A program made the translations under genes and the position numbers. Below the pieces are notes generated by a model. It made no database searches, was not told the DNA's origin, and saw only the letters and a list, made by a program, of their open reading frames with translations. A stretch of DNA of 64,000 bases from Piromyces finnis finn (lineage: Eukaryota; Fungi; Neocallimastigomycota): positions 372,001-436,000 of the forward strand of contig MCFH01000041.1 in assembly GCA_002104945.1 (NCBI GenBank), given 5' to 3'. Positions 1-58,684 of this stretch are shown one piece after another. Positions within the stretch are counted from its first letter, which is position 1, and each line of letters opens with the position of its first letter.

Positions 1-885
1 TAGATTGTCCAACATTTAGAGATATCCGTATTAAACATTATGATTCCATAGTTCAGCTATTAAATTTTTTCAGTCAACGTAATTCCAATAGTCCTATCAA
101 TAATAATGAAATTGTTAATATCAGTAGAGATAGTAATAACATTAATAGTAATAGTAACAATAGTAGTAATAACAATAGTAATAGTAACAATAGTAATAGT
201 AACAATAGTAATAATAACAATAATAGAAATAATAATATTAGTAATGATAGCAATAGTGAAGATAATAATTCTAATTTAGATAGTAATTTAGTTAATGATA
301 GTAATAGTTCTAATAATCCGGTGAATATTAATGTGTATGATTATTCTAGTGTGTACAGTAAAATATTTAAATTCCTTCTTGGGGGAAGAAGTTTTAACAA
401 TATTAATTACAATTCAAGGGAATGGAAAGAACTTTGTAAGCGTCAGATTCAATCTGATACTAACGAAGGAACACCATTCTTGACGGTAACCGCGGAACTT
501 CTAACCAAAATCATGCCTTTTGCTATTGGCCAGCAATGGTCAATGTTCAAAAGGTTTGAAGCAACATCCAAGAGCGTCAATGCTGAAGAAACAGTAAGAC
601 AGGCCAGGAGGGCCAGCGCAACCAATGGAGATCATAATTTTGTTCCATGATAAAATTTTGATCTTTGGCTCGGTGTCCCATTGGAAGTCAAATACAATTA
701 TTATACTTTAGTATGATAGTGGCTTTCTTACTTTAATTAAAATTACTAGAATACATTATACCCAATTTTTATTCATTTGTGTTTATTTAAACATATTTTT
801 TTTATTTTTATTTATTTTTAATTTTTTATTACATGTATTATAATTTTAATTAAATTAATAATAAAGTGTAAAAATATTTGATGCC

Positions 886-942
<57 letters not shown>
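1..942 (+). mobile_element. 3' end of a non-LTR retrotransposon (LINE copy 0), running off the left edge of the window
   Basis: Near-identical to the 3' ends of the copies at 47294 and 52526. Frame 3..650 encodes the same C-terminus (DCPTFRDIRIKHY...RASATNGDHNFVP*), followed by the same 3' UTR ending GATGCCGTT and a 54-nt poly(A) at 889-942. Confidence 0.95.
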
Positions 943-45632: not shown

Positions 45633-45923
<291 letters not shown>

Positions 45924-46071
45924 TTTGAATGGTAGTAAATAAGTTAAAGTTGTTATTATTAATTTAATAAAAAAAAAATTTTTTTTAAAAAATTAAACTA
46001 TGAAAAAAAAAAGAAATTGAAATAAACTGAATACAAGCAAATGAATAAAAAATGAGTACAATATATTCTAT

Positions 46072-46602
46072 TAAGGCGTGTCCTTAGCATACATAAGGCT
46101 TCTGGTTCGACCCCGCAGATGTCAGTGCCTGTGGATTTTCCCACTGGGTTTGCCATGGGTTGGGTTATGATATTCAGGTAAGTATAAATGAACTTTCTAA
46201 TTTACTACTATGATAATAACACTCGTCTAGCCGGCCTGAGAGGGTCTAGTGTACATGGTACATTCCAAATTAGAACTTAATAAGTGGTGACTTAGGCTAT
46301 GCCAAAAACACATAATATTCCTTAATCAATTTAAGTGTAAACATTAGGGGGCGGTTGACACGTGATCAAATTGACTATAAGAGGCTTAGCATTGTAGTTG
46401 TGAAATATCGTACAACGACATGCATCTAATGTACATGGATTAAGTGAGCGTCGAAGCTGAAGAAACAGTATGACAGACCAGGAGGGTCACAACCACCTAG
46501 CAATAGGAATGAGCCAACGTTTCTCTAAGAACCACCATTGGAGCTAACTCTGATCGATGGGAGAAAATGCACTCGGAAGTTAAAAAAAAAAAAAAAAAAA
46601 AA
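46072..46602 (+). mobile_element. SINE-like non-autonomous retroposon
   Basis: Flanked by a 14-bp direct repeat ACAATATATTCTAT (46058-46071 and 46603-46616) and ends in GTT(A)~21. It is GC-richer than its flanks and has no track ORF. It carries a B-box-like GGTTCGACCCC near the 5' end and a 39/44-nt match to the LINE 3' region. Confidence 0.85.
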
Positions 46603-46659
46603 ACAATATATTCTATATATTCTAGCCGTTTTAATTCAAAACTCTACTACTGTAAATTA

Positions 46660-47000: not shown

Positions 47001-47571
47001 CACCTATATGCTTAAAATAATCAATAACTAATTTAATATTAAAACTATCATAACCATTCAAGAACTTTGAATAATTACGTCACTTCACTATTTCTATATA
47101 AACCTTTAGCATTATTGATGAAATCATCATCGTTGTTTTATAATCTTCATTATTAAAATAAAGAATTTTGAATTTCAACCTTTTCAAATAAAATTTTAAA
47201 AACCTTTATTTATGAACTTTCAATATACTTTCATTCCAAATAATATTTTAACTTTCTTAAAAGAATTGAATTTACCCTAGTGATGATTTACTATTTTTTT
47301 TTTTTTTTTTTTTTTTTTATTTTTTTTTTTTAACGGCATCAAATATTTTAAACTTTATTATTAATTTAATTAAAATTATAATACATGTAATAAAAAAATT
47401 AAAATTAAAATAAAAATAAAAAAAAATATGTTTAAATAAACACAAATGAATAAAAATTGGGTATAATGTATTCTAGTAATTTTAATTAAAGTAAGAAAGC
47501 CACTATCATACTAAAGTATAATAATTGTATTTGACTTCCAATGGGACACCGAGCCAAAGATCAAAATTTTG

Positions 47572-50500
47572 TCATGGAACAAAATTATGATCTCCATTGG
47601 TTGCGCTGGCCCTCCTGGCCTGTCTTACTGTTTCTTCAGCATTGACGCTCTTGGATGTTGCTTCAAACCTTTTGAACATTGACCATTGCTGGCCAATAGC
47701 AAAAGGCATGATTTTGGTTAGAAGTTCCGCGGTTACCGTCAAGAATGGTGTTCCTTCATTAGTACCAGATTGAATCTGACGCTTACAAAGTTCTTTCCAT
47801 TCCCTTGAATTGTAATTAATATTGTTAAAACTTCTTCCCCCAAGAAGGAATTTAAATATTTTACTGCACACACTAGAATAATCATACACATTAATATTCA
47901 CCGGATTATTAGAACTATTACTATCATTAACTAAATTACTATCTAAATTAGAATTATTATCTTCACTATAGCTATCATTACTAATATTATTATTTCTATT
48001 ACTACTATTGTTATTATTACTATTGTTATTACTACTATTGTTACTATTACTATTAATGTTATTGCTATCTCTACTGATATTAACATTTTCATTATTATTG
48101 ATAGGACTATTGGAATTACGTTGACTGAAAAAATTTAGTAGCTGGACTATGGAACCATAATGTTTAATACGGATATCTCTAAATGTTGGACAATCTAATA
48201 ACCAATGTTTAATACTTTGAACACCACACTTGCAACATGGACAGTAGTTAGGACAAACTGGATCAACAAATTTAGCAGCTTTGGCAACTCTAGCATCCAA
48301 CTTGTATCCGCTTCTTGCTTTCAAGAGCCAGTAGAAGCCATAGGCAAACTCTGGGTACTCATAACATAATTTAATAAAATCTTTAGTTTCAATAAATTTA
48401 TTATCATCATAATATTGCGCTTTGATTGAATTTCCTTTGAGATCTTTCCAATAAAAGTTTTTAACTGCTTTAACATCTCCATGTTTCTTTAATTTTTTAT
48501 CAAGTGTCCTACTTGATTTGCACCACGTGTATTTTCTAAATTTAGGAATGTAATTGACAAGGTGTGAGATAATACAATTTGAGTTTTTCCATTTGTTAAA
48601 ACATCTAACCTGAGCTAACGCACATTTGGCTGACAATGGAGGAATATTCAAATCTTTTGAGATAGAGTATAAAGATATAAACGATACAGCTTTATGAACT
48701 CCGGCAACCCATCGTATTCCTTTGTTAACATGCTTCTGAGCAATTCTAGACCTAGCTTTGTTGGATCCAAGTAATGGTGCAAAGTATGAAACTCTGCTAA
48801 TCACTTGTGAGTTAAGTACTAGCTTTTTGAAGGGAATAGGAATATTAGGATTTCTTAAGAATTTACTGACTGAAAAAAGTCCTTTCAAAACCTTGTTATT
48901 AAGAGCTTTAATTACTGGTTTAAGGGACAGATTCTTATCAAATGGAACACCAAGATAAGTATAACAATCAGTAGTTGGAATGGGTTGTCCTGCTAAGTAA
49001 AATGTTGGATCTCTCTTGATCTGATTTTCTATTGATTCAGGACGAATCACCATCGTTGAACACTTCTGGATACCAAATTCCATTTCATTATACAATGCCT
49101 ATTCATTAACTCTTCTAAGCATCTTTTTTAAGCATCCTCTTGTTGGAGCACAAATAACTATATCATCTGCAAAAAGTCCACCACAGCATCGAGTGTCACC
49201 TAAACTGACTCCGAGATCTTCACACTCTTTAAATATATCATTAATAAAGAGATTAAAAAGAATAGGCGAAAGTGGGCAACCTTGACGGACTCCTTTCTTC
49301 ACATCAAAAGATTTCGAGAATTGTCCATCTAATTTGACATTAGCCTTAGATGTTAAATATAAATTTTTGATAAATTGTAAACTCTTACCTCGGATTCCTA
49401 AACAATCTAATTTATGGAGAATATTACCGATTGGGACTGAATCGTATGCTTTCCTGAGATCTAAAAAGGCCAAATATGTCTCTTTATTATCTAATTGACG
49501 TCTACGGCATATTTCTTGGATTGAAATGAAAAGACTGATACTTTCTTCCTTTTTTCGAAAACCAAATTGTTCAGGTCTAATGAAATTATCCTTTAGACCA
49601 TATTCTGAGATTCTAGTGGTGACAATTTTGGAAATCAACTTAATGCCATTATTGATAAGTGATATACCTCGATAGTTATCACAATCTGTCAAATCTCCCT
49701 TCTTAGGAATAGAAACAATACTGGATTCATTCCATGAGTTGGGGAAGTCTCCATCCCAAATACGGTTGAATAATTTAAGAATAAAATTTAAACCATGAGC
49801 ATCATTATCTGAAGTGGTATTACCGGAAGAATTATTATCTGTAGCATTATTAGAATCATTACTTGATGGAATTAATGCTTTGTAAAATTCAATTGGAATA
49901 CCATCCGGACCTGATGCTTTATAATTTGGAGTAGAGAGGATAGCTGACTTGACTTCATCAATACTAATATCTTGGTTGATATCCCATTCATCAAGCATAG
50001 GGAGTGAAAAACGTTTATTCGTTGGTTCTTCATACCAATGTTCTAAATCAAGACTTACACCACTTGGATCTGATGCAAGGTTTTCGAAATGATCATGCCA
50101 CACTTCTAGTCGTTCTTCTGTAGCAACAACTAATTCTCCATTTTTATTTTTAATTGGTTGAGCAATAAAGAAAGAATCTTTTCCAATTTTTGCAGTTTTC
50201 TTGATCCATTTCCAGACCTTCTTAGGATTATGACTCTTCATATACTCACATCCTGTTTTAATCCAATGAAGATATTCTTGCTTCCTAAATTCATTACATC
50301 TTTTGTGGATGTAATCAATGAGCTTACGGTAGATTTTAATTCTTTTAATAAATTCATCTATATCATAAATTCTTTCTTTTTTAAATCTCTTATACAACTT
50401 CATTTTGATTTTTTGGAGATTAAAAATTTGTTGTGAAATATGAAATGAAGACTTTATAACATTATTTGCTGAGGTAATACTGAGCTCGTCTGCAATTGAA

Positions 50501-52077
50501 AAAGCAGTTGAAGTAAACTCTTTGGAAAGTTCATCTGTAGAAACATTAGGATCGTTGAATTTTGCTGAAAGTATTTGGAATTTATTATGACTGAGAATAG
50601 ATTCCTTTTCCTCAATACATTTTAATCTATTTCATTTCAGAATTTTCTTAGGAACATTAAAGTCATTAGAAAAACCTTCCATAGGAATAATTTTACCATT
50701 AATAAGAAGTGGCTTATGGTCTGATACAGGATAAAAATTATTTATAAATGATCCTGAGTGAATAAGATCTTTCATCTTCGAATTGATAAGAGCATGGTCA
50801 ATGTCGGAAGATTGATCACCTCGAGTCCAAGAGATAGTAGACCCTCTAAGCGGAAGAATTTCCCAATCTCCTAATCCATTAGTTGATAACCAGTTGGATA
50901 ATTTTACTTTAGACATATTAAAATCACCAACAAGAATCGATGGATGGGATGAATGAGTTTGTAACCACAAGCGAACTTCTAACTTTGCATGATCAACATA
51001 GATGTTGTGATGACTATGAGGCATATAAACATTTCCAATCGAGCATTTGAATCTATTCCAGAGACTAAAAGTATAAATAGAAATAATATACTTTCCAGAG
51101 AAGTTTTCAAGTGAGGCTTGACACGAATTGTGAAAACCTAAATATAAACCTCTCATTCCAGGAACTGATTCGTCAGCTTTCTTGAAAAAGTGTCTATAGT
51201 TTCGCAAAGTAACACGACAAGGATAATCTGTATTCGATCCAGAACCATTACCAGTTTCTTGAAAACATAAAAATAATGGTTTGAAAATAGCTGTGAAATA
51301 GCTAATACTATCTCTCTTTTCGTGATTCCACCCATTGGTGTTCCAACTAAGACAAAAAGAAAAGTTATCAGGCTTGTTGGATGAGGATGAGGAAGAATCG
51401 TTGCTATTATTATTATTATTAAAGTCATCGTTATTAATGGATGATGCATCAGAGGAATAAGTAGAACTATTACTAGATGGCTGTGAAGCTGAAGAACTAT
51501 CAACTATTGAACTGTTATTTGAGTTGATAGAACTATTAGAATTAATTGTTGAATGTTGAGATTGAAATTGTGTTAGCTGTAGATCTGGAATATTTTCATG
51601 ATGGGAAACTTGTTGAAGATCTTGTTGAAGATCTTGTTGAAGATCGGATTGTTGATGAGATTGTTGAACTGATTGTTGAAATGATTGTTGAATAGAATGT
51701 TGATGTTTATTAGAAACTAAAATTTTACGTTTGAGAGTGGAAAAAGTGTATTTGTGATTCCTTCTACTACGAGCTGAAAAGGAAATTGAGGTAACTGAAA
51801 GTTTCTTCTTTAACATGTGTAAGATTTTAATACAATCTTTTGATGAACCATGAACCTTGACTAAGAAAAAGTGATCATTGAAAGTCTGAAAATATTTAAC
51901 ACTAATAACTGAATTAAATTTATCTTCTAGAATAACCTCGAGTTTTTCCCATAGCATATTTACTGACCATGATCGAATACCACGGATAAAGAAGGAGCGA
52001 ATATCATCTAAGGGGATACCATAAGACCGGGTACCACGTCTGATATAATTCTTATCTTTAATATAAAGGACTGACAT
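47572..52077 (-). pseudogene. LINE copy 1 polyprotein: RRM-like, Q/S/N linker, APE endonuclease, RT, C-terminal CxxC..H..C motif; one reading frame of 1501 codons interrupted by two stops
   Basis: Three track ORFs (52077-50632, 50403-49099, 49095-47572) are all in one frame. APE motifs are SWNTNG, FQET, NVYMP, VGDFN and SDIDH..SDH. RT motifs are KASGPDGIP, YRGISL, QFGFR, LDLRKAYDSV, GVRQGCPLSP and FADD. Stops are TGA at 50634-50632 and TAG at 49101-49099 (TGG in copy 2). Confidence 0.9.
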
Positions 52078-52521
52078 GATAATTAATTCTAATTAAAAAA
52101 AATTGAATATAAAATAAATACTAATAAAAATTATAAATATAACGTATATGGAAAAAAAATCTGTCTCTCTCTCTCTTCTTAAAAGTACTGGATAGTACAA
52201 AAATTGTTACGATGCTTTGTTTAAAGTTTCTTTTTTTGAATTCTAGTTGTAAATTTTCTTTAAAAATTCTAGTTTTGGTTTGTTGTTAGTAAATTCGAAT
52301 CGCTTTTTGACACTAAACTTGTTTGACTTTACTTTTCATTAAATATTTAAATTGGTAAAAAATTTGAATCAAGAATGTCGACACCAGAAAGCTTGTGAAT
52401 AGTATTTTTACATGATGTAGAGTGAATCAGTCTCTTACAAGAAACAATACAACAATAGCTACATGAATATAAAAATACAATGCAAATGCTAAAGTTGACT
52501 ACATTGGATTCTTACAAGAGA

Positions 52522-52525
<4 letters not shown>

Positions 52526-52569
<44 letters not shown>

Positions 52570-55500
52570 GGCATCAAATATTTTAAACTTTATTATTAAT
52601 TTAATTAAAATTATAATACATGAAATATAAAAATTAAAATAAAATAAAAATAAAAAAAATATGTTTAAATAAACACAAATGAATAAAAATTGGGTATAAT
52701 GTATTCTAGTAATTTTAATTAAAGTAAGAAAGCCACTATCATACTAAAGTATAATAATTGTATTTGACTTCCAATGGGACACCGAGCCAAAGATCAAAAT
52801 TTTGTCATGGAACAAAATTATGATCTCCATTGGTTGCGCTGGCCCTCCTGGCTTGTCTTACTGTTTCTTCAGCATTGACGCTCTTGGATGTTGCTTCAAA
52901 CCTTTTGAACATTGACCATTGCTGGCCAATAGCAAAAGGCATGATTTTGGTTAGAAGTTCCGCGGTTACCGTCAAGAATGGTGCTCCTTCATTAGTACCA
53001 GATTGAATCTGACGCTTACAAAGTTCTTTCCATTCCCTTGAATTGTAATTAATATTGTTAAAACTTCTTCCCCCAAGAAGGAATTTAAATATTTTACTGC
53101 ACACACTAGAATAATCATACACATTAATATTCACCGGATTATTAGAACTATTACTATCATTAACTAAATTACTATCTAAATTAGAATTATTATCTTCACT
53201 ATTGCTATCATTACTAATATTATTATTTCTATTATTGTTATTATTACTATTGTTACTATTACTATTGTTACTATTACTATTGTTACTATTACTATTGTTA
53301 CTATTACTATTAATGTTATTACTATCTCTACTGATATTATCAATTTCATTATTATTGATAGGACTATTGGAATTACGTTGACTGAAAAAATTTAATAGCT
53401 GGACTATGGAATCATAATGTTTAATACGGATATCTCTAAATGTTGGACAATCTAATAACCAATGTTTAATACTTTGATCTCCACACTTGCAACATGGACA
53501 GTAGTTAGGACAAACTGGATCAACAAATTTGGCAGCTTTGGCAACTCTAGCATCCAACTTGTATCCGCTTCTTGCTTTCAATAGCCAGTAGAAGCCATAG
53601 GCAAACTCTGGGTACTCATAACATAATTTAATAAAATCTTTAGTTTCACTAAATTTATTATCATCATAATATTGCGCTTTGATTGAATTCCCTTTGAGAT
53701 CTTTCCAATAAAAGTTTTTAACTGCTTTAACATCTCCATGTTTCTTTAATTTTTTATCAAGTGTCCTACTTGATTTGCACCACGTGTATTTTCTAAATTT
53801 AGGAATGTAATTGACAAGGTGTGAGATAATACAATTTGAGTTTTTCCATTTGTTAAAACATCTAACCTGAGCTAACGCACATTTGGCTGACAATGGAGGA
53901 ATATTCAAATCTTTTGAAATAGAGTATAAAGATATAAACGATACAGCTTTATGAACTCCGGCAACCCATCGTATTCCTTTGTTAACATGCTTCTGAGCAA
54001 TCCTAGACCTAGCTTTGTTGGATCCAAGTAATGGTGCAAAGTATGAAACTCTGCTAATCACTTGTGAGTTAAGTACTAGTTTTTTGAAAGGAATAGGAAT
54101 ATTAGGATTTCTTAAGAATTTACTGACTGAGAAAAGCCCTTTCAAAACCTTGTTATTAAGAGCTTTAATTACTGGTTTAAGGGACAAATTCTTATCAAAT
54201 GGAACACCAAGATAAGTATAACAATCAGTAGTTGGAATGGGTTGTCCTGCTAAGTAAAATGTTGGATCTCTCTTGTTCTGATTTTCTATTGATTCAGGAC
54301 GAATCACCATCGTTGAACATTTCTGGATACCAAATTCCATTTCATTATACAATGCCCATTCATTAACTCTTCTAAGCATCTTTTTTAAGCATCCTCTTGT
54401 TGGAGCACAAATAACTATATCATCTGCAAAAAGTCCACCACAGCATCGAGTGTCACCTAAACTGACTCCTAGATCTTCGCACTCTCTAAATATATCATTA
54501 ATAAAGAGATTAAAGAGAATAGGAGAAAGAGGGCAACCTTGACGGACTCCTTTCTTCACATCAAAAGATTTCGAGAATTGTCCATCTAATTTGACATTAG
54601 CCTTAGATGTTAAATATAAATTTTTGATGAATTGTAAACTCTTACCTCGGATTCCTAAACAATCTAATTTATGGAGAATATTACCGATTGGGACTGAATC
54701 GTATGCTTTCCTGAGATCTAAAAAGGCCAAATATGTCTCTTTATTATCTAATTGACGTCTACGGCATATTTCTTGGATTGAAATGAAAAGACTAATACTT
54801 TCTTCCTTTTTTCGAAAACCAAATTGTTCAGGTCTAATGAAATTATTCTTTAAACCATATTCTGAGATTCTAGTGGTGACAATTTTGGAAATCAACTTAA
54901 TACCATTATTGATAAGTGATATACCTCGATAGTTATCACAATCTGTCAAATCTCCCTTCTTAGGAATAGAAACAATACTGGATTCATTCCATGAGTTGGG
55001 GAAATCTCCATCCCAAATACGGTTGAATAATTTAAGAATAAAATTTAAACCATGAGCATCATTATCTGAAGTAGTATTACCAGAAGAATTATTATCTGTA
55101 GCATTATTAGAATCATTACTTGATGGAACTAATGCTTTGTAAAATTCAATTGGAATACCATCCGGACCTGATGCTTTATAATTTGGAGTAGTGAGGATAG
55201 CTGACTTGACTTCATCAATACTAATATCTTGGTTGATATCCCATTCATCAAGCATAGGAAGTGAAAAACGTTTATTCATTGGTTCTTCATACCAATGCTC
55301 TAAATCAAGACTTACACCACTTGGATCTGATGCAAGCTTTTCGAAATGATCATGCCACACATCTAGTTGTTCTTCCGTAGCAACAACTAATTCTCCATTT
55401 TTATTTTTAATTGGTTGAGCAATAAAGAAAGAATCTTTTCCAATTTTTGCAGTTTTCTTGATCCATTTCCAGGCCTTCTTAGGATTATGACTCTTCATAT

Positions 55501-55746
55501 ACTCACATCCTGTTTTAATCCAATGAAGATATTCTTGCTTCCTAAATTCATTACATCTTTTGTGGATGTAATCAATGAGTTTACGGTAGATTTTAATTCT
55601 TTTAATAAATTCATCTATATCATAAATTCTTTCTTTTTTAAATCTCTTATACAACTTCATTTTGATTTTTTGAAGATTAAAAATTTGTTGTGAAATATGA
55701 AATGAAGACTTTATAACATTATTTGCTGAAGTAATACTGAGCTCGT
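52526..55746 (-). mobile_element. 5'-truncated LINE copy 2 nested in the 5' leader of copy 1
   Basis: Poly(T) at 52526-52566 and a 13-bp TSD TACAAGAGAAGAG at 52513-52525 and 55746-55758. Identity to copy 1 starts at (A)CGAGCTCAGTATTAC. Confidence 0.93.
52805..55744 (-). CDS. Stop-free RT and C-terminal part of the LINE polyprotein in copy 2 (lacks RRM and APE)
   Basis: An open frame with all RT motifs. The first ~20 residues of the track ORF (MLLYFFLLFMYSCSTTLLLY) come from the flank and TSD, not the element. Confidence 0.85.
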   Translation of the reverse strand, partial: ELSITSANNVIKSSFHISQQIFNLQKIKMKLYKRFKKERIYDIDEFIKRIKIYRKLIDYIHKRCNEFRKQEYLHWIKTGCEYMKSHNPKKAWKWIKKTAKIGKDSFFIAQPIKNKNGELVVATEEQLDVWHDHFEKLASDPSGVSLDLEHWYEEPMNKRFSLPMLDEWDINQDISIDEVKSAILTTPNYKASGPDGIPIEFYKALVPSSNDSNNATDNNSSGNTTSDNDAHGLNFILKLFNRIWDGDFPNSWNESSIVSIPKKGDLTDCDNYRGISLINNGIKLISKIVTTRISEYGLKNNFIRPEQFGFRKKEESISLFISIQEICRRRQLDNKETYLAFLDLRKAYDSVPIGNILHKLDCLGIRGKSLQFIKNLYLTSKANVKLDGQFSKSFDVKKGVRQGCPLSPILFNLFINDIFRECEDLGVSLGDTRCCGGLFADDIVICAPTRGCLKKMLRRVNEWALYNEMEFGIQKCSTMVIRPESIENQNKRDPTFYLAGQPIPTTDCYTYLGVPFDKNLSLKPVIKALNNKVLKGLFSVSKFLRNPNIPIPFKKLVLNSQVISRVSYFAPLLGSNKARSRIAQKHVNKGIRWVAGVHKAVSFISLYSISKDLNIPPLSAKCALAQVRCFNKWKNSNCIISHLVNYIPKFRKYTWCKSSRTLDKKLKKHGDVKAVKNFYWKDLKGNSIKAQYYDDNKFSETKDFIKLCYEYPEFAYGFYWLLKARSGYKLDARVAKAAKFVDPVCPNYCPCCKCGDQSIKHWLLDCPTFRDIRIKHYDSIVQLLNFFSQRNSNSPINNNEIDNISRDSNNINSNSNNSNSNNSNSNNSNSNNSNNNNNRNNNISNDSNSEDNNSNLDSNLVNDSNSSNNPVNINVYDYSSVCSKIFKFLLGGRSFNNINYNSREWKELCKRQIQSGTNEGAPFLTVTAELLTKIMPFAIGQQWSMFKRFEATSKSVNAEETVRQARRASATNGDHNFVP

Positions 55747-55843
55747 ACAAGAGAAGAGTAGTACTACATGAATACATGAATAAAAGAAAAAAATACAGCA
55801 ACAAAATGTATTACTCTTCCAATTAAATACTATACAAACTTAC

Positions 55844-56083
55844 CTGAGTATCAAACATTCAACTTATTCATCAAATACTTAAATTCGATGAATAAAATGT
55901 TTTTTAATCGCTCAGTACCATGAGCTTAGTCCTAATAATTTTCCCTTAAAGACTAAACAAGCATCCATTGCGCAATGCTTGGATTTAATTCTTTCTACTC
56001 TCTCAGTACCATGAGCATGAGTAGACCCCCTTGATAAACTCCATTATTAAATGAATGAAGGCACGTTCCTAAGAGGGCACTAA
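55844..56083 (-). other. Structured 5' leader of the full-length LINE (five closely packed hairpins) ending at a CAG|GTAAGT splice donor
   Basis: Inverted repeats at 55853-55902, 55910-55925, 55926-55956, 55958-55981 and 55994-56025. The donor GT is at 55843-55842. Confidence 0.6.
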
Positions 56084-56791
56084 GATGATTTACTACTCTC
56101 TTTTCATTATTTCAATTTTATAACATTTTTTTTTCTTTTTATTATTATTTTTTATTATTATTAGTTTTAACTTTATTAATTTGGGAAAGCCTTTATTTCT
56201 TTTTTTTAAAAAATTTTGTTGCTTTTTTTTTTCTTCTTTTTTTTTTTTAATATTTTAATATTTTAATTTTTTTATTTTTATTAAATGATTATAACTTTAT
56301 TATTTATTATTAAATATATTTATAGAGAAAAAAAAATTTTTTATAAAAACTATACTTTATATCATATGCAAATTATTTAATATTTTTTATATTATAAATA
56401 TAATTTAGATGATGAATTTTTGTTAAAAAAAAAAAAAAAAAAAAGAAAGAAAATATTAAAAATAGTATTTATATATTAGAGATAAGTTAATAAGTTAATG
56501 GGATTTTTATAAAAGATAAAAGTTAATGTTTTTTTAAATTTTTAACTTAGTGAAGAAAAATATAGGATTATAATAAACATTTTTCCTTTATTTTTCTTCA
56601 CTATCTTTTTTAAAAAAAAATTAAATTTTAAATTGATATCATTAAATTATTTTAAAAATATATTTTTCTAACCTTGTTTTTAATTTCTTTCATTTATATC
56701 CCTTTTCCTTTTTTTTTCTTTTTATTTTATATAAAAGGATGGTTGGTGTGGTATGTTTAAATTAGTTTTATGTTTCTACAATATATTAAAT

Positions 56792-58684
56792 TTACTTTTG
56801 GTGAAGGCTCATATCTTGAATAGCCTTAGAACGGTCATTGTAGTGAGTGTGTAATAATTCGTGAGAAAGGTGACCATTTGGTTCCTTTAAGAATTCCTTG
56901 TAAAGTTGTTGAACATCTTGGTTTTCGTGAGATAAACGAAGAGTAGCTTGCTTATCCATAGTGTACATACGTTCCATCTTCTTAATAACAATGCTTGGAT
57001 CAGCAGACTTTGGTTGACCACCACCGTTAATACAACCACCTGGGCACATCATCATTTCAACGAAGTCAAATTCAACTTCCTTGTTCTTAATCTTTTCTAA
57101 GAACTTTTGAATGTTAGCACCACCACTGACAACAGCAGCACGAACGTTAACATCCTTACCATCCTTAGTCTTTAATGGAACATTGGCAGCCTTAATACCT
57201 TCAAGACCACGAACAGCCTTTAATTCACCTAATGGAATTGGGTTTTCAACACCAGTAATAATTTGAGCGGTACGAACAGCAGCTTCCATGACACCACCAG
57301 TAACACCGAATAAATTACCAGCAGAAGAACCAGTACCTAATGGACTGTCATACTTTTCATTTTGAAGTTCAGCTGGGTTAACCTTCTTAAGCTTTAATAA
57401 AGTCATTAATTCACGGGTAGTAATAACATGGTCAATATCTGGAACACCGTTCTTAGCGAATTCTGGGCGCTTAGCTTCACCCTTCTTGGCGGTACATGGC
57501 ATGACACTAACATGGATAATGTCTTCTGGCTTGGCGTTAATCTTCTTAGCGAAGTAAGACTTAATAACAGCACCAATCATTTGTTGTGGAGACTTACAGG
57601 TAGAAAGATTTTCACGTAATTCTGGGTAACTCTTTTCAACCATGTTAATCCAACCTGGACAGCAAGAAGTGAACATTGGGAACTTACCACCTTCATTTAA
57701 GCGGTTAATTAATTCAGTACCTTCTTCCATAATAGTAAGATCAGCAGAGAAGTTAGTATCGAAGACGTAATCAAAACCGAGCTTACGTAAACCAGCAACC
57801 ATCTTACCAGTGAAATCGAAATCTGGTTCAGCATTGAATTCTTCAGCAAGAGCAGTTCTAATAGCTGGAGCAGTTGAAACAACAAGGATCTTCTTCTTGG
57901 AATCTAATTGTCTTAAAACTTCGATACATTCATTTCTTTCAGTAATAGCACCAACTGGACAAACTTGAGAACATTGACCACATTCAACACACTTAGTGAA
58001 GTTCATTGGTCTATCCATTGGGGTACCAACACGTTCGTAACCAGCACGGTTGATGAAACCTAAAATGTTAATGTTTTGGAAGTGGTGGCAAGCTCTAATA
58101 CAACGACCACACTTAACACACTTGTTCATATCTCTAGCAATAGAGAAAGTGGAGTTATCGAATGGAGAGTAGCATGGTTCAGTAATACTGTGGTTAGTTT
58201 TATCAAACTTTCTCTTAAGAAGAGTTCTAACTGGGTGTTGAGCATCAATTTGATATCTGTAAATTAAATCTTGGAATTCACAGTTACCATTAGATTCACA
58301 AGTCATACAATCATTTGGATGTTCTTCACGCATCATAGCTAAACTAGATCTAACAGTTTCTCTAACAGCTGGAGTATCAGTTTCAATTTCCATACCTTCC
58401 CAAACTTCAGTAGTACAAGCAGTTAATGGCTTCCATGAACCCTTAACATCAACTAAACAAAGTCTACAGTTACCAGCAATTGGTAATCTTGGGTGGTAAC
58501 ATAAAGTTGGAATGTAAAAACCATTAGCCTTAGCAGCATCAAGAACAGTGGTCTTTGGTGGAACTTGAATCTTACGACCGTTAATAGAAATGTTAACCAT
58601 CTTTTCAGCAGCTGAAGCTAAAGTACGAGACATTGGCTTAACAGCTTGAGCTGTCTTGTTTAAAACATTTGATATTGAAGACAT
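56792..58684 (-). CDS. hydA: Hydrogenosomal [FeFe]-hydrogenase (long form with 2Fe-2S, His-ligated 4Fe-4S and 2x4Fe-4S domains), intronless
   Basis: H-cluster motifs FTSCCPGW, MPCTAKKGE and EMMMCPGGCINGGGQP are present, plus CxxCxxCxxxC ferredoxins and HPNDCMTCESNGNC. The S/A/R-rich N-terminal presequence is MSSISNVLNKTAQAVKPMSRTLASAAEK. Confidence 0.97.
   Translation of the reverse strand: MSSISNVLNKTAQAVKPMSRTLASAAEKMVNISINGRKIQVPPKTTVLDAAKANGFYIPTLCYHPRLPIAGNCRLCLVDVKGSWKPLTACTTEVWEGMEIETDTPAVRETVRSSLAMMREEHPNDCMTCESNGNCEFQDLIYRYQIDAQHPVRTLLKRKFDKTNHSITEPCYSPFDNSTFSIARDMNKCVKCGRCIRACHHFQNINILGFINRAGYERVGTPMDRPMNFTKCVECGQCSQVCPVGAITERNECIEVLRQLDSKKKILVVSTAPAIRTALAEEFNAEPDFDFTGKMVAGLRKLGFDYVFDTNFSADLTIMEEGTELINRLNEGGKFPMFTSCCPGWINMVEKSYPELRENLSTCKSPQQMIGAVIKSYFAKKINAKPEDIIHVSVMPCTAKKGEAKRPEFAKNGVPDIDHVITTRELMTLLKLKKVNPAELQNEKYDSPLGTGSSAGNLFGVTGGVMEAAVRTAQIITGVENPIPLGELKAVRGLEGIKAANVPLKTKDGKDVNVRAAVVSGGANIQKFLEKIKNKEVEFDFVEMMMCPGGCINGGGQPKSADPSIVIKKMERMYTMDKQATLRLSHENQDVQQLYKEFLKEPNGHLSHELLHTHYNDRSKAIQDMSLHQK

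Follow-up and report, generated by a model that had tools for sequence, protein, structure and literature searches.

A recently amplified SINE-type retroposon and its probable L1-like LINE partner in the anaerobic gut fungus Piromyces finnis

The element at positions 46072-46603 of a 64-kb window (64,000 nucleotides of Piromyces finnis contig MCFH01000041.1, the whole stretch of DNA analysed here) is very probably a copy of a 535-nucleotide (nt) non-autonomous retroposon of the short interspersed nuclear element (SINE) type, here named family A, inserted through the endonuclease (EN) and reverse transcriptase (RT) of an L1-like long interspersed nuclear element (LINE). A full-length copy of this LINE lies ~700 bp from the SINE in the same window. 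Family A has the classical build of a SINE, with a head, a body, a LINE-derived segment and an A-tail, and one head occurs in several families. Its unusual traits are a head without recognised ancestry, a conserved splice-donor motif that recurs for the most part in the 5' untranslated region (UTR) of the LINE, and a segment taken from the coding end of the second open reading frame (ORF2) of the LINE.

The window copy and family A

The sequence itself shows that the window element (46072-46603) is non-coding and arose by retroposition, as an earlier first-pass annotation of this DNA had proposed; it bears a 14-bp target-site duplication (TSD) and a tail of 22 A. The 5' copy of the TSD, ACAATATATTCTAT, is located at 46058-46071 (+) and the second ACAATATATTCTAT at 46603-46616, its first A being common to the TSD and the tail; counted without this A, the 3' copy is CAATATATTCTAT at 46604-46616 (+), preceded by one A of the tail. 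The body of the copy (46072-46581, +) corresponds to nt 27-535 of the family consensus with 99.6% identity, the only differences being one substitution and an extra A; its last bases, CGGAAGTT, are followed by the poly(A) stretch at 46582-46603 (+). The first 25 nt of the consensus are missing. Since the T at 46071 can be read either as the last base of the TSD or as consensus nt 26, there is a 1-nt microhomology and the copy starts at consensus nt 26 or 27. This truncation point, which the first-pass annotation had taken as the 5' end of the element, coincides with the foot of the main hairpin of the head; the 5' end of the family itself lies 25 nt further upstream. The same truncation point occurs in one other copy (L039), two copies being too few to indicate a preferred stop. 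The G+C content is ~42% in the region of the SINE vs mostly 10-30% across the window. The longest stop-free stretch of the family consensus spans 52 codons, which agrees with the earlier statement that the element holds no open reading frame (ORF). An (ATT)n microsatellite of ~120 nt (45800-45925) is present ~130 nt upstream of the insertion site.

A whole-genome search with the 510-nt body returned 849 first-look candidates, of which the best 40 were scored; these covered the full query at ~100% identity and were spread over many contigs. Counting with head and tail patterns, allowing up to two mismatches, gave 183 heads and 268 tails in the genome, and none with the reversed patterns used as controls. 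Family A thus comprises ~270 copies, two thirds of them full length and one third 5'-truncated. The flanks were read in 30 copies, nearly all of which extend 25 nt upstream beyond the start of the window copy, and the full-length ones share a common start, GTCGTTCCAGTTTTTATCCTGGTTG followed by TTAAGGCG (also written GTCGTTCCAG / GTCGTTCC). Directly upstream of it, each copy is bordered by unrelated DNA and by its own direct repeat.

Sequence identity was evaluated in 42 sampled copies, a sample biased towards the best matches. The consensus was reproduced without any difference over 534-535 nt in 37 of them. All 42 carry an A-tail, with lengths from 8 to 132 nt, and 34 have a clear TSD of their own (9-16 bp, or 10-17 bp when the A's hidden in the tail are counted), so that the search for genome-wide copies with a common 5' end and distinct TSDs, suggested in the first-pass annotation, had a positive outcome. 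A T precedes the nick in 28 of 32 copies. As the sampled copies are almost without divergence, the amplification is recent, and family A represents a very recent burst. The family is nevertheless older than this burst, as indicated by a decayed copy (L093:1484-1785) with many transition differences and an internal deletion of ~200 nt, the 5' end of which, GTCGAACCAG, perfectly complements CTGGTTCGAC, a sequence of the B-box region discussed below.

Two further loci depart from the common structure. In the copy in L030 (1455-1473; G000:C13, ~750231-750249), the 13-bp TSD is separated from the usual first base by 19 additional nt, GGGGCGTAAAAGAAAGAAG, and this purine-rich extension resembles the linker found in the metagenomic contig L080 (see below). 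At G000:C150:542378-542630 (-), three head matches with a period of 110 bp look like a tandem array of head units.

The element was also found in public sequencing runs labelled as four coded organisms, where it showed no differences over 161-505 nt, and parts of it were detected in three gut metagenomes. Its k-mer depth was very high in one run (X4), which would fit abundant RNA as well as the copy number of a DNA repeat, the status of this run as RNA being a guess.

The L1-like LINE and the sequences it shares with the SINE

The full-length LINE (47294-56083, -) has ~5.5 kb of its own sequence, with a 5' UTR, an apurinic/apyrimidinic endonuclease (APE), an RT, an AATAAA signal and a terminal GCCGTT(A)n, and is flanked by a 12-bp TSD (TAGTAAATCATC, at 47282-47293 and 56084-56095). 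It is interrupted in its 5' UTR by a nested, 5'-truncated LINE of the same family (52527-55745, -) with a 14-bp TSD of its own (ACTCTTCTCTTGTA, at 52513-52526 and 55746-55759). A third copy, a 3' fragment with the hairpin segment described below, the 3' UTR and GCCGTT(A)n, is located at 572-894 (+). The GCCGTT(A)n tails of the three copies are found at 47326-47337 (-), 52561-52572 (-) and 883-894 (+). The ORFs of the LINE on the minus strand encode Exo_endo_phos (APE) and RVT_1 domains. Among solved structures, the closest relative of the RT is human L1 ORF2p (E = 2e-33, vs 8e-19 for R2), which is no more than indicative of a place within the L1 clade.

The SINE and the LINE have a short internal segment in common. 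Nucleotides 401-450 of the SINE (46446-46498, +, in the window copy) match the end of ORF2 with 85% identity over 53 nt (E = 5e-9) in all three LINEs of the window. In the full-length LINE, this segment lies at 47598-47650 (-) within the last codons of ORF2, the stop codon being at 47572-47574, with further occurrences at 52831-52883 (-) and 572-624 (+). The genome contains at least 664 copies of the LINE version, without any mismatch in the first 100 listed, which indicates that the LINE is both abundant and young. Contigs of one public run enter the hairpin segment of the SINE from the end of the LINE ORF2 (loose end at 1874), and other contigs of this run leave the SINE exactly at the end of its shared head into a second family, described below; these junctions independently confirm the boundaries of the two modules.

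The common segment is predicted to fold into two small hairpins with 4-bp stems (GCUG-AAGAAA-CAGU and GACC-AGGAG-GGUC in the SINE). In the alignment of the SINE and LINE versions, 90.6% of the cells are paired in register, vs 12-34% when the partner is slid, and one base pair is compensatory, A-U in the SINE and G-C in the LINE. With four distinct sequences, the alignment is no more than suggestive of a two-hairpin "handle" by which the LINE machinery may recognise the SINE RNA.

Outside this segment, the 3' parts differ. The last ~85 nt of the SINE are unrelated to the 3' UTR of the LINE, and the AATAAA found ~25 nt before the tail of the LINE has no counterpart in either SINE family, which fits an A-tail that is templated. 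The terminal GTT(A)n that had been noted as common to SINE and LINE is indeed present in both; as a sign of kinship, it is probably meaningless, as it comprises 3 nt only and the second SINE family ends in GTCT.

A second likeness between the two elements is located near their 5' ends. The shared head of the SINE ends at TTCAGGTAAGTATAA, where the sequence CAGGTAAGT (46175-46183, +) conforms to the consensus of a 5' splice site complementary to U1. In the 64-kb window, CAGGTAAGT has only two matches (0.17 expected), the one in the SINE and one in the 5' UTR of the neighbouring full-length LINE, at ~nt 238 of the LINE (55838-55846, -). It contains most of AGGTAAGTA, which is invariant in the four heads compared below, ~130-150 nt from their start. 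Around the motif, ~45 nt of family A can be aligned with the LINE 5' UTR (p ~0.007 by shuffling); beyond these ~45 nt, the LINE 5' UTR showed no likeness to the SINE head, and family B shares only a 10-mer with it. An intron-like stretch follows the motif on its 3' side in both the SINE and the LINE, and that of the LINE is a plausible one of ~84 nt, ending in a pyrimidine run and TAG. The insertion point of the nested LINE is just past this stretch. No genomic copy of the SINE lacking the intron-like stretch was found, and no splice joint was observed in the contigs of four runs; the donor is thus apparently unused for splicing in the RNA that is copied. A donor motif that is conserved on both partners without any sign of splicing is an unexpected feature.

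The hallmarks of insertion, the 53-nt segment from the end of ORF2 and the ~45-nt likeness around the splice-donor-like motif all favour the earlier proposal of a SINE partnered with the local LINE. Based on these observations, we propose a scheme in which the ORF2 protein of the LINE would take up the SINE RNA through its A-tail, probably together with the two-hairpin segment, would nick the target at a T|A site, prime on the A-tail and reverse-transcribe the RNA. Reverse transcription would often reach the 5' end and sometimes stop early; in the window copy it would have stopped at nt 26, i.e., 25 nt short, at the foot of the main hairpin. With less confidence, we suggest that the head supplies the signals for transcription, with the B-box hinting at RNA polymerase III (Pol III).

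The head module and its possible origins

The head of family A is common to a second family, family B, of 523 nt. The latter, with TSDs and poly(A) of its own, has GGAAGTCT(A)n with a terminal GTCT as its 3' end and comprises at least 21 head-bearing copies (~43 candidates). Some family-B copies are only 71-91% identical, indicating that family B is the older one. The two families are 75% identical over their first 142-154 nt and unrelated thereafter. A search with the 3' 250 nt of family B returned only family-B copies (71-100% identity) and no partner LINE. With a degenerate head pattern, two AT-rich contigs with more diverged heads (L079 and L080) were detected among public metagenome contigs, and within the genome the pattern for further head-bearing families matched only the old, decayed family-A copy. 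Two metagenome contigs of 40% G+C (L077:8577-8603 and L078:3056-3082) have in common, without any difference, a stretch that includes a degenerate tRNA-like motif, TTAGCAT...CTGGTTCGAGTCTCGG; this stretch is unrelated to the fungal SINE head and is probably a repeat of another eukaryote.

In the window copy, the remainder of the conserved head of ~145 nt extends over 46072-46187 (+). The CCTTA-GCATACA-TAAGG hairpin near its start and the B-box-like GGTTCGACCCC (46104-46114, +) are both present, as the first-pass annotation had described. In the four-way alignment of the heads of family A, family B, L079 and L080, the invariant positions are GTCG..CCAGTTT.TATCCTGGTTGTTAAG, TTAGCAT and AAGGCT.CTGGTTCGAC, and all four head types carry the B-box-like motif GGTTCGAC in perfect, unvaried form. 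Folds predicted from single sequences and from the alignment pair the GTCG and CCAG of the 5' terminus, a part missing from the window copy, with CTGG..CGAC, i.e., the B-box region, and also form a hairpin GTTAAG(G)-loop-(C)CTTAGC, whose loop, between GTTAAG and TTAGC, varies freely in sequence. The terminal helix is a perfect 10-bp duplex in L080 and in the old family-A copy L093. As the stems of this helix and of the GTTAAG hairpin hardly vary, the data agree with the fold but do not prove it by covariation. For a further hairpin, around a conserved AUUUUC loop, reading by eye showed stems that differ between family A and L080 yet are complementary in each; in family B it is weak. We infer that the head is a conserved structured module in which a 5'-terminal helix would enclose a hairpin whose stem is constant and whose loop varies.

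With its default settings, ARAGORN called no tRNA, whether the window copy, a full-length copy or the whole window was searched. Under relaxed thresholds it called two of the four heads vs 15% of shuffled heads (400 shuffles), i.e., the heads score no better than shuffled sequence. Rfam searches with E-values up to 10 gave no match to tRNA, 5S, 7SL, small nuclear RNA (snRNA), vault RNA or Y RNA in any of the four heads, and the tRNA model had no match to the 91-nt head alone even when noise of 7-10 bits was listed. Accordingly, the head shows neither the recognisable cloverleaf nor the covariance match of a tRNA-derived SINE (SINE2), and, with no 5S match inside any head in Rfam, it does not resemble that of a 5S-derived SINE either. 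The caution of the first-pass annotation about a tRNA-like head was well placed: the B-box is conserved, the A-box is unconvincing and a tRNA is undetectable by ARAGORN or Rfam. A tRNA origin of the head is a possibility and no finding.

Among the tRNA matches scored in a genome search, tRNA-Arg(TCT) was dominant. It occurs 10 nt from tRNA-Glu(TTC), in the same orientation, on several contigs (L045:1419-1574, L072:1419-1574, L049:1501-1655 and L053:1501-1655), as would be expected of a dicistronic tRNA unit that is repeated.

The transcription signals of the copies or of a master gene are probably located in the head, whose invariant, perfect B-box suggests Pol III. Several observations weigh against our proposal of a classical SINE mobilised by the LINE. 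The head has no convincing A-box, family A has a TTTTT at nt 11-15 that could act as a Pol III terminator, and neither ARAGORN nor Rfam recognises a tRNA, 5S, 7SL or snRNA in any head; the conserved U1-complementary donor motif is more typical of transcripts of RNA polymerase II (Pol II), and the near-identity of the copies is possibly also explained by a single master gene with an external promoter. The T5 run, the missing A-box and the U1-type motif thus call for caution on Pol III. As to recognition by the LINE, 84 of 500 shuffles equalled the score of the hairpin segment, only one compensatory change is found among four distinct sequences, and the z-scores of the fold are only -0.5 to -1.8. 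The segment is also 85 nt away from the tail in the SINE and ~270 nt in the LINE, and is thus non-terminal, unlike in classical stringent pairs.

Some of these observations could be accommodated if family A consisted of processed copies of one or a few highly expressed, polyadenylated non-coding RNAs (ncRNAs) transcribed by Pol II from a promoter outside the element, the head being a conserved first exon that ends at a splice donor or a U1 site. Such an element would behave as a SINE without being one of the Pol III type. We regard such a Pol II master-gene retroposon as possible, although the smaller share of our expectation lies with it. The identity of 37 of the 42 sampled copies is what a single source would produce; the T5 run and the lack of any detectable small-RNA ancestry are in line with it, as are the invariance of AGGTAAGTA at the boundary of head and body in four families and the recurrence of CAGGTAAGT in the LINE 5' UTR, and the 19 extra nt at the 5' end of the L030 copy suggest a transcript that started upstream of the element. 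However, the SINE, unlike the LINE, has no AATAAA-type signal before its A-tail, neither a spliced genomic copy nor a spliced contig in the four runs was found, GGTTCGAC is perfect and invariant at the position of a B-box, and a head common to two families with different bodies is the classical modular build of SINEs. An origin of the head from tRNA-Ala(AGC), i.e., a SINE2 whose tRNA part has decayed beyond structure-based recognition, is an unlikely alternative to a head without tRNA ancestry. Exactly 13 nt separate the sequence CTTAGCAT, with an AGC as in an anticodon loop, from the GGTTCGA downstream of it, a spacing that is canonical for a tRNA; a weak A-box-like TATCCTGGTTG begins 44 nt upstream of the B-box, at the position expected of an A-box, and GTTCGA is shared with the T-loops of the tRNAs of this genome. 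Nevertheless, the putative anticodon, D and acceptor stems fail to pair, in the conserved fold the 5' end is joined to the B-box region, the ARAGORN and Rfam results given above are negative or at the level of shuffled sequence, and pattern searches of the genome found no canonical tRNA-Ala(AGC) gene for comparison.

More improbable still is a master locus composed of a 5S rRNA gene, a purine-rich linker and a SINE, transcribed by Pol III reading through from the 5S gene. The contig L080 offers such an arrangement, with a complete 5S rRNA gene at 1176-1294 (-; Rfam, 106.9 bits) that has only TTT as a terminator and ends 16 nt (AAAGAAGAAAGAGGGA) before the SINE head at 1000-1159 in the same orientation, and the 19-nt extension before nt 1 of the L030 copy is similarly rich in purines. 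This is a single locus on a single metagenomic contig, 5S sequence was found upstream of none of the ~50 sampled copies of families A and B, and a chance insertion or a template-switch chimera, as in Magnaporthe (PMC2104539), would equally account for it. The first-pass annotation had itself named two other ways in which a SINE could be mistaken, namely the 3' part of a second LINE family, with ragged 5' ends extending into an RT ORF, and a single processed ncRNA pseudogene, and we consider these hardly credible. The 5' truncation of one third of the copies and the LINE-like 53-nt segment inside them would suit a fragment of a LINE, but 183 copies (against 268 tails) begin at one sharp 5' end, immediately preceded by TSDs and unrelated flanks, none of the 42 sampled copies is joined to RT-coding sequence, and ~270 copies do not fit a single pseudogene. 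The common 5' end, the TSDs and the counts of heads and tails refute both.

Going beyond the SINE with LINE-encoded mobility that we favour, we also considered, as a speculation with rather poor odds, that the ~145-nt head represents a novel type of SINE head and no decayed copy of a tRNA, 5S or 7SL RNA. It would be a structured RNA module kept in different SINE families and in different species of anaerobic gut fungi, and its invariant terminal motif would be a site for the U1 small nuclear ribonucleoprotein (snRNP) that is used without splicing. The role of the putative U1 site could be to protect the RNA from premature cleavage and polyadenylation in a genome of ~80% A+T, or to retain it in the nucleus for reverse transcription. 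If true, the LINE and the SINE would have two functional RNA signals in common, a U1 site near the 5' end and, towards the 3' end, a two-hairpin handle.

Comparison with known retroposons and surroundings of the element

The described fungal SINEs are all from the Dikarya, i.e., MgSINE of Magnaporthe, Foxy of Fusarium oxysporum, Egr1 and EGH24 of Blumeria, AfuSINE2 and AfuSINE3 of Aspergillus, and nrs1 (PMC5063351). Like these, which are ~0.15-0.9 kb long and occur in tens to a few hundred copies, family A is a short non-coding retroposon that has TSDs and probably depends on a resident LINE, and several of the Dikarya SINEs also have a head that bears a B-box. The Dikarya SINEs named here come from Ascomycota, whereas family A comes from the Neocallimastigomycota. 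Unlike them, family A has a head that is not detectably like a tRNA or a 5S RNA, a splice-donor motif at the end of this head, and copies that are essentially identical, which indicates that the family was active very recently. In a full-text literature search, no publication dealing with SINEs of anaerobic gut fungi was found, in accordance with the remark on novelty in the first-pass annotation.

Stringent pairs of LINEs and SINEs share a 3' stem-loop, as in UnaL2 and UnaSINE1 of the eel and in the tRNA-derived SINEs partnered with CR1 or RTE. Family A resembles them in having a short LINE-like segment with predicted hairpins kept by a compensatory change, and in the modular build, in which one head is combined with different bodies and tails. 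It differs from them in that the segment is internal and derived from the last codons of ORF2, that the 3' ends of SINE and LINE are unrelated except for GTT, and that both family A and its LINE end in long poly(A) instead of short tandem repeats.

The poly(A), the variable TSDs of 9-17 bp, the frequent 5' truncation and the preference for a T|A nick are features also known from the mammalian SINEs that depend on L1 (Alu, B1 and B2), and the closest solved relative of the partner RT is likewise human L1 ORF2p. On the other hand, Alu and B1 have no sequence in common with L1, while family A shares the 53-nt segment and the 5' motif with its LINE, and its head is not 7SL- or tRNA-like by Rfam, unlike the heads of the mammalian SINEs.

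A further group for comparison are composite or processed elements mobilised by LINEs, such as SVA-like elements, processed ncRNA families and the WEIRD/Mg-SINE chimeras of Magnaporthe (PMC2104539). Family A is like them in that an origin from Pol II or another polymerase is conceivable, in its probable mobilisation by a LINE, in its splice signals and in the occasional 5' extensions or chimeras. The sharp common 5' end, the conserved B-box and the head module common to several families set it apart from such composites and place it closer to the classical SINEs.

A young and abundant pair of SINE and LINE in an early-diverging, extremely AT-rich anaerobic fungus widens the picture of SINEs in fungi, where they have been studied only sparsely, in contrast to animals and plants. 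Both partners look recently active and have a candidate recognition element in common, and thus make it testable how an L1-like LINE of the poly(A) type chooses its RNA. The ~270 insertions of the SINE and at least 664 of the LINE also give rise to insertional polymorphism and mis-annotation, and provide strain markers, in the genomes of gut fungi, which are being mined for biomass-degrading enzymes.

Besides the retroposons, the window encodes an intact [FeFe]-hydrogenase ORF of 630 amino acids (56792-58684, -; Fe_hyd_lg_C, E = 3e-97), located ~700 nt from the 5' end of the LINE, and a chitin synthase.

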